NCBI GenBank assembly: GCA_003693705.1
Contig: RBZT01000219.1
Span: forward strand, 1 to 64,000
Reading direction: 5' to 3'
Origin: Polymyxa betae A26-41
Taxonomy: Eukaryota; Protista; Endomyxa: Phytomyxea
Length of the DNA stretch: 64,000 nt
The position numbers were made by a program, and so were the translations under genes. The notes beneath the pieces were generated by a model. It saw only the letters and a program-made list of their open reading frames with translations, was not told where the DNA came from and made no database searches. This document shows positions 42,888 through 46,545 of the stretch, in pieces; the stretch's first letter is position 1; every line of letters starts with the position of its first letter.

Positions 42888-43003
42888 ATACATATTTATT
42901 GATAGGATTGGTGATGACCACAGCTTAGATGGTAGCGGACGCCTTCTCTTAACAAATTCATCCCATTCCGGAGCGGATCGACTGCTAGGCTGCCTCGCCA
43001 TCA

Positions 43004-45040
43004 ATGTCGTTAGTAATAGCACAAAAACGTCATCGCAAGCTTAATGGTGATTACCCAACTCCATTAATCTGGGTTCAGGAGGCATATCATCTTCTCGATC
43101 AATGCATCGGTTCTCTCCTTTATCACTTTTCAACAGTCACGTTGCGTTCGATTTTGACGTACTGACCCTCAGGCCCGAATTGGAATCAAACGATGACAGT
43201 TTGGGATGCTTCATGTGGAGCAGGCAATCTGGTGCGTCTTCGCTCATTCTCATCACTGATTGCAACAACATTGAAAGGTGAAGTAAGCACACATGGCGAC
43301 CTGATCGGCCCATACAAACGATATCTATTACAGGATCTGGATCTCATCCATACAGATACCCGAGTTCAGCGTCCACTCGATTTTCTGTCCTCCATAACGA
43401 TCAGCGACGATATCAGCGATATCCTTCTCCATTCAGATGCGATCCTGTTCCTCAATAACCCTCCGTACAAAACCGTTAATGAGCAGACCTTCCATGGACG
43501 GGTACGACGTCCGGCCGGTCATACGAACACAGTGGTAAAACAGGTGGGCCCGATATTAGATGTTTGACGTGAACAATTGATTGGCGAGTTATTAGGCGAT
43601 GAAGAGAGTATCTCTTAATCGTGCAGGTGATCAGGTTAAGTGAATGATCTCCTGGATCTATTGCTCTTATTCTCTAATATATTTACATATTAGTTATCAG
43701 TACAGTTTATGTTCAAAATAACAGAGATCATGCGCATGCAAATATGTAATCAAGCAAGATTTAATAATAGATCAATATATATGGGTATATTTATACCAGC
43801 TAATATATTGACAGGACCTGCATATCATTCGTTTCGAAGGTTTTGGACTCCCATATCTGTGCAGTTCAATTAATTCATTATCTATAGCTACTTGTTGCAG
43901 CATTGGGATTATACGTCTGCATTCATGATGCCAGCGAAGGCATTCTCAGGCGTCAACGGCATCTTCTCAATCGTATTCGTTATCTGGCGCTGCCGCATGG
44001 ATATGATCCCATCTCCATCTCATATTAAGTTTGATGTTCGTCTTTTACAATCTGATATTCATCATACTAATGTGGAGGATATTGGACATCTGACCTTATC
44101 ACCAGCACGATACGACCAACGCATCAATCTATGGGCAAAATCTCGCCGATCATCGACATCAAATCTGTGCAGTATGACGCCGCTCACCAGCCCATTGACT
44201 GTACAGACCACTTGCCGGTATTACTGTCGTTAAAACTTAGGATTTAGGGTTTAGGGTTTCGTTGCAGGTATTCTGCTCTGACGCAGCTACCGTCAGATGC
44301 AATAGGTTATCTTCATTCTAATGGAAACAGTGTTCAACATAATGGTCAGTTAGTGGGGCTGTATTCCTCAGCATTCGCTGCTGGTCATGGTGTAGTTGTC
44401 CGACCTGATAACTTTGAAAGAATTTGTGCTGTATTCACAGCTCGACGTCTGATAACACGTACATGGTCGAACTGGCTCTTGGAATATTGCTGGCCAAGAG
44501 TTGCTTCAGGGTTTGATTGTTGGTGTCGTGATGCCGTTATATTCGCTTTGTTCGATGTTAAGGCCAATCAGTCAGCATTAAGGTCACCCCGAATCATCAA
44601 TCAATGGTTCTGGATGGGTCGTGACCATATCCGTTCGTGTTCCTGCGATAAAGTCGCTGTGGATCTCGGCTCAGATCATCCGGCGTCGGAGAGGTTTGTA
44701 TACCAATGGATTCAACGAAATCGTTCTCTTTTAGGTCTGTCCAATCTGTTTGAGTATTGAGTTGCTCTGTTTGAGCTTGGTCTGCTTAACAGGAGCGGAA
44801 GCGGAAACATTATTATCATTTGCAGAGAATACTGTATCGGAATCTATGTGGTTAAGATTAGAAGGTGATTATGGTACCGATTCCTGGGATGCCGGATGGT
44901 ATCAAATAAGGAAATTGATCTGTTCGCATGGTGGAGATGAAGCTCGACGATTTCTTCACACATGGAATCAGTTAAGAGCTAGACTAGCAGCCCATCTCAT
45001 CGATGGCGTCTATAAATTCGGATTTCTACCTCGTCAGTAA
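43004..45040 (+). CDS. Bacterial restriction-modification-type amino (N6-adenine or N4-cytosine) DNA methyltransferase, about 7 introns, about 550 aa
   Basis: The spliced frame is intact: motif X GDYPTPLIW, motif I VWDASCGAGNL, LDFL, motif IV FLNNPPY, later MTase strands (QFMFKI, GIFIP..IL.G, AF.MPA.AF.GV...FSIVFVIW), then a long TRD-like region ending WDAGWYQIR...VYKFGFL. Confidence 0.85.
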
Positions 45041-45261
45041 GCTAATAGCGAGCTCATTAACAGTTTTGAAGATCAATTTTGAATAAACTTGAATCGATGT
45101 AACTCAGAGTGAAAGTTTCCATGAAGTTTTCCATAAAGTCAGACGCATGAGATGGCGTCGGATTAGGCCTTGAAAACCTGTGGTGACGATCGTCCGGCGG
45201 GCGGTGAATTTATGCCCGGAGCCATGCCGTCATTATCCAGGTCCGAGAATTCATTTCCATT

Positions 45262-46545
45262 ATGGTCATGGAACAATCAGCAGAGGGTCTCGTTAATCTG
45301 CCTTATGGTCTTCAATCCGAATATTTCTATGATGCCTCCCATCGTCTAATGTATAATTATGACGCTGATAGCCGTCCTTTCTTTGTCCCGCCGGGCTACA
45401 TGCGTATCGGTTTGGAAGAGCATCGCATCCGCTGTTGCCCGCCGGGCTTGTACGACCTGGAACCGCACGAGAAATTCCAGGCGGTCCAGATGCGATTCTG
45501 TGCACCTAATACTGACATGGGTAGCAACGTTGTTGTTGACGTGCCTACTGGCGATTTCACTGAAGCGGTCTTAATACGACAGCCAACTCGCGACATTTAT
45601 GAAATGCAGCTGATCGTACAGGCCCGCATCACAGCCATGAAGAAATTCGCGATGGCGAACTCTTCGAACCCCGGTGCGGTCGTCTACATGATCATTCGCA
45701 ACGAAGTTGTGCAGAATTTACAGAGTCTTGAGGCGCCGCAGACGCTGTCGTCGAAACGCGTTCTGAATGCCCTGAATGAGAAGACGGCGTCAATCGGTCT
45801 GTCGATACGATCGGTATTCGTTGATACGGTCACGTACGATCACAAATTTCGCTCGAACCGTGGCCCACCGAAACGTTTTCCAGCTTACACAGGACCAGCA
45901 GCAAAAAGTGTGCATTCTGATGGACCTGTAGCAACACCGTTAGAAGACGTTGACCCGGTTGTAAATCTTCGAACGGATATCCCACCTTTACGTTTAGCAA
46001 AGCTGCATCACATGAACAGAAACGATTTACAGACAGACAAGTCGATGTCGGGATTAAGTTCTGATATCGCACCATCTGTAATATTACAGGCTGGTAGTCC
46101 TGCATCTGCTGATGTCTTAAAGCCACAAATCACCAGCCCAATGGTGCCAACTGATGTTAATGAAACCAAAAGCCAGGTTGAGTCCTGCGATAATATCCCT
46201 GTTGTTGACACGACGCCGCCACCGATGATGTTGGGACGCAAGTATAACAGTTATTCGGCATCTGATAGTGATGATATCACTGGTACATTCGAATCGAACC
46301 GTTTTCGTCCACGTCGACGTGAATCAAGTTTGTTAGCGCGTATGGCAACAGCAGCCCAGACGAGTTTGTTCCCTGGAAAAGCAGCAACTAAGGATAGTGG
46401 CCGCGAACATCTTTCGAGTTCATCGTCTTCAGCGTCGACCTGGTCGCTCTGCAATTGTGAGGCCCGAGATGAAGATGAGGATGCTTATCTGTCTGAAAGC
46501 AATAATGATGATGATGATGATGACGTGGCAAAAGAGCAATCATAA
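45262..46545 (+). CDS. 427-aa protein, possible divergent SPFH/band-7 domain plus disordered acidic tail
   Basis: VPPGY..IG.......PPGLY, TRD....L.VQARIT and LNEK...IGLSIRSVFVDTV follow the SPFH pattern; intronless. Confidence 0.55.
   Translation: MVMEQSAEGLVNLPYGLQSEYFYDASHRLMYNYDADSRPFFVPPGYMRIGLEEHRIRCCPPGLYDLEPHEKFQAVQMRFCAPNTDMGSNVVVDVPTGDFTEAVLIRQPTRDIYEMQLIVQARITAMKKFAMANSSNPGAVVYMIIRNEVVQNLQSLEAPQTLSSKRVLNALNEKTASIGLSIRSVFVDTVTYDHKFRSNRGPPKRFPAYTGPAAKSVHSDGPVATPLEDVDPVVNLRTDIPPLRLAKLHHMNRNDLQTDKSMSGLSSDIAPSVILQAGSPASADVLKPQITSPMVPTDVNETKSQVESCDNIPVVDTTPPPMMLGRKYNSYSASDSDDITGTFESNRFRPRRRESSLLARMATAAQTSLFPGKAATKDSGREHLSSSSSSASTWSLCNCEARDEDEDAYLSESNNDDDDDDVAKEQS

Follow-up and report, generated by a model that had tools for sequence, protein, structure and literature searches.

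A spliced nuclear gene of prokaryotic restriction-modification origin in Polymyxa betae and Plasmodiophora brassicae encodes a putative sequence-specific DNA adenine methyltransferase

The stretch of DNA analysed here (the window) comprises 64,000 nucleotides of contig RBZT01000219.1 of Polymyxa betae A26-41. On its forward strand, at positions 43004-45040, it carries a methyltransferase (MTase) gene whose eight exons are separated by seven GT-AG introns, each 48-63 nt long. The coding sequence has 1656 nt (551 codons or amino acids) with no internal stop once the exons are joined, in agreement with the initial annotation, which had proposed about seven short GT-AG introns and an open frame. 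The exons were joined only for this check of the frame, and the database searches were made exon by exon. At the sensitivity of the genome search the gene is single-copy in P. betae. Its neighbours are ordinary eukaryotic genes, with a spliced gene that ends just upstream and a peroxiredoxin nearby. The features of the locus are given below, together with the joints seen in RNA-derived contigs (by run) and the equivalent introns of the Plasmodiophora contig L005 and the metagenomic contig L008.

43004-43109, +: exon 1; start codon and motif X GDYPTP (43046-43063); 43% identical to Plasmodiophora PBRA_006996
43110-43172, +: intron 1; 63 nt, phase 1; common to Plasmodiophora (L005 2207-2277); joint in X1 and X4
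43173-43282, +: exon 2; SAM-binding motif I WDASCGAGNL (43202-43231)
43283-43333, +: intron 2; 51 nt; common to Plasmodiophora (L005 2388-2437); joint in X1
43334-43543, +: exon 3; DFL motif and catalytic motif IV NNPPY (43454-43468)
43544-43595, +: intron 3; 52 nt; no joint among the RNA contigs; same position in the Plasmodiophora model
43596-43634, +: exon 4; 39 nt, 13 codons in both species
43635-43693, +: intron 4; 59 nt; common to Plasmodiophora (L005 2766-2823); joint in X9
43694-43839, +: exon 5; 30% GC; QF motif and next strand of the MTase domain
43840-43887, +: intron 5; 48 nt, with an in-frame stop; absent from Plasmodiophora; no joint among the RNA contigs
43888-44217, +: exon 6; end of the MTase domain (family-invariant Phe retained) and start of the recognition half
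44218-44267, +: intron 6; 50 nt; common to Plasmodiophora and L008; joint in X9; telomere-like repeats (TTTAGGG type) at 44237-44256
44268-44734, +: exon 7; target-recognition domain (TRD), with the frozen, putatively base-reading segment at 44299-44400
44735-44792, +: intron 7; 58 nt; common to Plasmodiophora and L008; joints in X5 and X1
44793-45040, +: exon 8; stop codon, preceded by the helical C-terminal domain with the family signature WDAGWYQ (44885-44905)
42903-45265, -: spliced antisense RNA, possibly more than one transcript; GT-AG introns 43118-43166 and 44954-45029 (run X5)

The first residue of motif X is residue 15 (43046), and the part of the protein beyond the catalytic domain is about 300 residues long. 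The motifs X, I and IV in gamma-class order, with a long TRD-like C-terminal half as had been recognised from the start, lie at the positions listed, and this order with a C-terminal TRD is that of gamma-class N6-adenine MTases. From the ATG of exon 1 the frame is preserved in RNA contigs of a related lineage, despite an indel directly upstream. Among contigs of four public runs, recognised as RNA-derived by their spliced joints, five of the seven introns (1, 2, 4, 6 and 7) were seen spliced, with the joints of introns 4, 6 and 7 in near-identical contigs and those of introns 1, 2 and 7 in the related lineage, which is about 95-99% alike. RNA confirms the predicted introns only in part: for introns 3 and 5 these runs gave no spliced contig, and no piece spanning the whole mRNA was found among their contigs. 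Intron 5 is supported by the Plasmodiophora protein, which runs uninterrupted through that position.

A search of exon 7 against 1.84 billion representatives returned 400 matches, including L005, a eukaryotic contig with 59% GC. Its protein was identified by a profile search as PBRA_006996 of Plasmodiophora brassicae (CEO98882.1, A0A0G4IUG6; alternative model SPQ92952.1), which has 623 aa and is annotated only as hypothetical. This ortholog is 45% identical to the window protein over 540 aligned residues (38-55% by exon), has all the catalytic motifs and the same domain content, and shares six of the seven window introns in position and phase. It differs in its intron set, where window intron 5 is missing and one intron is its own, in its neighbours, which are the ferritin and FANCI genes, and in its longer termini. 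One Plasmodiophora model has 60 additional N-terminal residues that show at most a faint likeness to the helical linker between nuclease and MTase of the prokaryotic family (2 of 500 shuffles were equal); on that faint likeness alone, this extension would point to a longer donor.

The metagenomic contig L008 (protein P0001), of 605 nt, is 73% identical to the window and contains introns 6 and 7. Between the two, dN is 0.19 and dS is about 3, which is near saturation. This excess of dS over dN, together with the retained motifs, bears out the purifying selection that had been inferred from the window alone. Two further fragments, P0006 and P0015, have the same signature. P0006/P0151 (ENA ERZ23498364, ERZ27279858) form the deepest eukaryote-like branch and contain low-complexity inserts, with a 390-aa ORF, probably the MTase half, about 50 nt upstream. 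The tree, the low-complexity inserts and the split gene call are the grounds on which P0006/P0151 and P0015 are inferred to be eukaryotic. Scans of metagenomes and viruses with eukaryote-specific patterns gave no further eukaryote-type loci.

All relatives outside the eukaryote-like set are unnamed prokaryotic or phage proteins, found in Clostridium, Bacteroidales, Treponema, Saccharibacteria, a nanoarchaeon, plasmids and uncultured phages. Most have about 810 aa and consist of a nuclease-like domain, an MTase and a TRD, as in Type IIG/IIL enzymes. Their N-terminal domain has the invariant pattern E..DG..ExK..QxxxY, which, going by the motif pattern, fits the PD-(D/E)xK nuclease of Type I and IIG enzymes; no sequence match to this domain was obtained in Pfam or the PDB. 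No characterised member of the family was found, and no Pfam, NCBIfam or PADLOC model scored above its cut-off; Pfam and PADLOC searches with single window exons were likewise without significant match. PBRA_006996 matches the family profile with an E-value of 1e-123, from position ~274 of 814 onward, and its MTase and TRD, held in one chain, are homologous to full-length Type IIG/IIL-like members with 29-32% identity over ~580 aa. The profile also matches M.BseCI by sequence (E 0.002), in an alignment that places motifs X, I and IV opposite one another.

Nuclease-free members of 530-570 aa, which begin just before motif X, are known in both phages and bacteria. Several of them lie on phage contigs close to terminase, portal or tail genes, and in those tested no gene for the N-terminal domain lies upstream. 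The nearest Atlas clusters are of nuclease-free size and about half viral. The viral members come from metagenomic contigs only, and cultured phage genomes gave no match to exon 7 or to a nuclease-free homolog. An identity with the Borrelia BBE02-type protein was dropped given that no Borrelia plasmid matched. Some phage-like members, P0002 (L004 698-3712), P0004 (L009 10001-12232) and P0008, have two to five tandem recognition cassettes; in P0002 the order is circularly permuted as well, so that the protein starts with the otherwise C-terminal helical domain. Many proteins of ~305 aa contain the recognition half alone. Together, the tandem-cassette members and these recognition-only proteins suggest an unnamed family of multi-specificity MTase or restriction-modification (R-M) proteins.

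The N-terminal PD-(D/E)xK nuclease is missing from the chain in both protists, which therefore do not meet the definition of a Type IIG/IIL enzyme. An exon-wise search of the P. betae genome, of limited sensitivity, did not reveal the family nuclease domain at any other locus, and no nuclease-like sequence was found upstream of the Polymyxa or the Plasmodiophora gene. Judged by its sequence, the protist protein is derived from the Type IIG/IIL-like family without being a functional member of it. Since phage members of equal size lack the nuclease, it may already have been missing at the time of transfer. The initial description of a nuclease-free, domesticated enzyme is thus correct in that the nuclease is absent, but its loss need not belong to domestication, given the nuclease-free members in phages and bacteria.

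In a tree of the C-terminal region (FastTree), which places the eukaryote-like rows among 182 others, apparently prokaryotic and viral, a single clade with an SH support of 100 unites the window exon, PBRA_006996, P0001 and P0006. P0006 is the deepest within it, and the full-length tree agrees. The homologs, the tree and the ortholog demonstrate a horizontal origin from a prokaryotic family of R-M type followed by domestication, as the initial annotation had proposed. The sister group is unresolved in the FastTree trees and the donor was not identified. The simplest reading of the sequences would be one acquisition, with a prokaryote or phage as donor, in a common ancestor of Polymyxa and Plasmodiophora. 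A giant-virus origin is not favoured, given that nucleocytoviral MTases reach a TM of about 0.3 versus 0.65 for a siphovirus protein.

The fold was assessed with an AF2 model of PBRA_006996 (111-row alignment, pLDDT 90.6, pTM 0.90), used as a stand-in for the window protein. The top match is DrdV (Z 19.3, residues 2-582), with M.BseCI at 17.9 and MmeI at 17.8, and further matches are Type I M subunits, LlaBIII, M.TaqI, CamA and BpuSI. DrdV, M.BseCI, MmeI and CamA align over almost the whole model, whereas KsgA and METTL5 reach a Z of 15 or less and cover the catalytic domain only. A prokaryotic family member gives the same list of structural matches. The fold of the ortholog model is therefore nearest to M.TaqI-, M.BseCI- and MmeI-type enzymes, as expected for the gamma class. 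No sequence matches were obtained to HemK/N6AMT1, METTL5, Trm11 or KsgA, for which the structural Z-scores are lower and the coverage partial, and HemK-, METTL5- and Trm11-like genes exist separately in the P. betae genome. A grouping with HemK/N6AMT1, Trm11 or METTL5, which would have refuted the initial annotation, did not occur, since both matches and fold point to DNA N6-adenine MTases. The hallmarks of MT-A70/AMT1 enzymes (circularly permuted fold, DPPW, PF05063) are absent from the protein.

Although the two proteins are 55% divergent, both keep NPPY and the SAM-binding motif I intact. Of the 89 columns with at least 85% conservation in 110 prokaryotic and phage homologs, 67 are retained in the window protein and 63 in the Plasmodiophora protein, including the D and G of motif I, NPPY, QF and the invariant Phe. 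A few residues conserved in the family have changed, among them the Tyr before QF, which is Ser/Ala. The region after motif I is the most diverged (18-22% between the protists).

The opposite is observed in the recognition half. Between the two protists, the 34-residue segment encoded at 44299-44400 is 85% identical, and identity over residues ~351-390 of the ortholog is 85-91%, compared with 42% elsewhere; the 34-residue segment is 76-91% identical among five eukaryote-like sequences, although three of these were found with exon 7, which introduces a bias. Among prokaryotes the mean identity is 34-35% over the region of residues ~351-390, and prokaryotic pairs with a background of 40-50% have a mean of 36% in the 34-residue segment. 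To allow for the post hoc choice of the segment, the best window was taken for each of 3101 prokaryotic pairs of matched divergence; the largest excess was 0.49, and none reached the 0.57 of the protists. The segment falls within the unit that is tandemly repeated in P0002, P0004 and P0008, which, together with the recognition-only proteins of ~305 aa, is as expected of a specificity cassette shuffled in conflict. That a segment so variable in prokaryotes is almost invariant between the protists points to a conserved target sequence, and the recognition sequence has probably remained unchanged across the plasmodiophorid lineage. That the segment reads bases is inferred and has not been shown.

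The reading that we prefer, at a probability of roughly two in three, is that of a captured R-M protein with MTase, TRD and helical domain that makes N6-methyladenine (6mA) at a fixed site in double-stranded DNA, where catalysis, target and role are inferred from family and fold. Encoded by a single-copy nuclear gene, the protein retains these three parts of a Type IIG/IIL-like R-M protein and would act like the nuclease-free MmeI-type DnmA or like CamA, binding SAM and reading a fixed double-stranded site of 5-7 bp with its own TRD. The adenine would be flipped out and methylated at N6 by means of NPPY; as with MmeI-type enzymes, the site would probably be asymmetric and modified on a single strand. 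The mark would be regulatory or a mark of self, of the type made by orphan MTases, and not part of restriction; this is an inference and the weakest step of the proposal. Given the absence of both a nuclease domain and a chromatin-reader fusion, the mark would depend on DNA sequence alone.

A first-look, exon-wise search of the draft P. betae genome found neither a C5 methylase (PF00145) nor a Dam-type enzyme. METTL3/14 and AMT1 were not detected in it, and the one MT-A70 gene found (L149) is METTL4-like. The captured MTase could therefore be the main DNA methylase of the organism, with the reservation that absence from a draft is unproven. A methylome of bacterial style in plasmodiophorids, in which one conserved genome-wide 6mA motif, independent of chromatin readers, is the main DNA mark, is a tentative extension that we put forward with less than even confidence. 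The same genome contains a decayed fragment of a beta-class N6/N4 MTase (L153, G000:C964:23341-23502), interrupted by stops and lying in an AT-rich region, which is apparently a second, dead MTase of prokaryote or virus type.

The explanation that can be set aside most firmly is that the sequence is a contaminant from bacteria or phages, or a pseudogene in decay. In its favour, the assembly is the product of binning from a mixed sample (PMC6328671), and many of the contigs over the gene keep introns or are antisense. Nonetheless, the frame is open, dN is far below dS, and the GC content is host-like in both species (44% and 65%). Because intron positions are shared with Plasmodiophora and introns are seen removed, bacterial contamination is excluded, as had been argued from the introns at the outset. 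A eukaryotic self/non-self system, with this protein as its methylase half and an unrelated nuclease or reader elsewhere in the genome, would require just such a fixed target, but it is very improbable: the family nuclease was not found in the genome, within the limited sensitivity of the search, or upstream of either gene, the neighbours are ordinary eukaryotic genes that differ between the two species, and conflict systems usually diversify their specificity, while the protist MTase froze its own. The identity of the product leaves slightly more room for doubt. Amino-MTases share their chemistry, and some with NPPY or NPPF modify cytosine. N4-methylcytosine (4mC) is also the product in the rotifer precedent (PMC8885841), but it is SPPY that is typical of 4mC writers (PMC4738411, PMC8885841), and the nearest structures are N6-adenine enzymes, which makes 4mC an improbable product here.

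Two unlikely alternatives that carry somewhat more weight concern the use to which the recognition half is put. The protein may be a sequence-specific DNA-binding factor in which methyl transfer is weak or lost. The recognition segment is indeed far more conserved between the protists than the catalytic domain, in which divergence peaks after motif I, but motifs X, I and IV and the conserved aromatics are intact in both species at 55% divergence, so that we grant this only a small chance. A marginally better one is left to recruitment to another substrate, such as structured RNA, with the frozen segment recognising a conserved RNA. Four to five R-M-derived N6-adenine MTases have become RNA methylases (PMC4738411), a frozen segment suits any conserved target, and retention in single copy is typical of housekeeping enzymes. 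However, the entire DNA-type TRD and helical domain are retained and match DNA-bound enzymes, no RNA-binding domain is fused to the protein, and HemK-, METTL5-, Trm11- and METTL4-like genes are present separately.

Among the known systems to which a 6mA writer of fixed specificity can be compared, MmeI (5hr4), DrdV (7lo5) and BpuSI (3s1s) also have a gamma MTase followed by a TRD and a helical C-terminus and are the best structural matches. The protist protein shares only 8-13% sequence identity with such Type IIL/IIG enzymes, has no nuclease and belongs to a separate, unnamed family. DnmA of B. subtilis, CamA of C. difficile, M.BseCI and M.TaqI also combine MTase and TRD without a nuclease, but they are prokaryotic and belong to other sequence families, whereas the protist gene is nuclear and spliced. 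DnmA, a homolog of MmeI without the REase motif, marks a non-palindromic site and gives no phage protection (PMC9973331); by inference from this analogy, it may be the closest functional analogue of the protist MTase. AMT1/MTA1 enzymes of the MT-A70 type would make the same base, but have an unrelated permuted fold and methylate ApT symmetrically.

According to the main text of PMC4738411, R-M systems have supplied eukaryotes with adenine MTases on at least 13 occasions, and in two clades of M.EcoKI/M.TaqI-like enzymes (5 and 6), noted in rhizarians and/or basal fungi, the MTase carries a fused specificity domain. These Group-2 clades of Iyer, Zhang and Aravind resemble the protist MTase in structural group, R-M origin and fused specificity domain. 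They differ in that the same main text describes a Type I MTase-S domain in Reticulomyxa, while the protist MTase has no Methylase_S match; no Reticulomyxa or fungal proteins were among its homolog matches, and Plasmodiophora is not mentioned in that main text. Membership of clade 5 or 6 is therefore unlikely, although identity with clade 6 is not excluded on the main text alone. The bdelloid N4CMT (PMC8885841) and the fungal MetB (cited in PMC12695648) are also bacterial amino-MTases captured and kept by eukaryotes. N4CMT, the precedent that has been tested, is a beta-class enzyme with SPPY that makes 4mC and is steered by a chromodomain (PMC8885841), whereas the protist enzyme is of gamma class, with NPPY, a frozen TRD and no chromatin-reader fusion.

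No report on this gene, or on 6mA in plasmodiophorids, was found in the literature, and the plasmodiophorid MTase is very probably undescribed. The suggestion of an undescribed eukaryotic system made in the initial annotation holds to that extent, but the capture of R-M amino-MTases is already known and recurrent (PMC4738411, PMC8885841), so that the present case is a new instance with a distinctive design and not a new principle. What distinguishes it is that the prokaryotic sequence reader has been kept and frozen, which predicts a methylome defined by a motif in a eukaryotic nucleus. To our knowledge, 6mA and 4mC in eukaryotes are written either by the ancient AMT1 system or by enzymes of bacterial descent that a fused chromatin-binding part has redirected. 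If our reading is correct, this would be the first DNA modification system for Phytomyxea and would give a function to a large unnamed family of prokaryotic and phage proteins. The hosts are a protist that parasitises roots and the related clubroot pathogen, in which a mark of bacterial style has seemingly never been sought, and an enzyme confined to this lineage and maintained by strong selection might offer a target for the control of such crop parasites.

With regard to expression, the depth of RNA contigs is 1-18 over most of the MTase gene compared with 60-150 for its neighbours, and the sense mRNA looks scarce, although contig depth is a poor measure. Several RNA contigs over the gene retain introns and some are spliced in antisense. 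The longest ORF of the antisense RNA has 66 aa. Its start may be the promoter of the next gene, and the MTase may be regulated by it. The scarce sense mRNA and a spliced antisense cover without a long ORF may mean that expression is confined to some life stage, which is an inference. Further possible antisense introns were noted at 43445-43488 (X9) and 43008-43061 (related lineage, X4). Downstream, at 45262-46545, lies an ORF of 427 aa without introns that matches Band 7/SPFH only weakly (E 0.12) and has far deeper RNA-contig coverage than the MTase gene.

Exon 5, reported initially as AT-richer at about 43694-43839, indeed has 30% GC against 44% for the whole MTase coding sequence. Together with intron 4 and the Polymyxa-only intron 5, it makes up the most AT-rich 256 nt of the window (43635-43890, 30.5% GC). 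The equivalent Plasmodiophora exon has 64% GC, like the rest of its gene, and for this reason a relic of donor DNA was rejected and the AT-richness is considered a local feature. In run X5, coverage by RNA contigs is interrupted at precisely this interval, 43635-43890.
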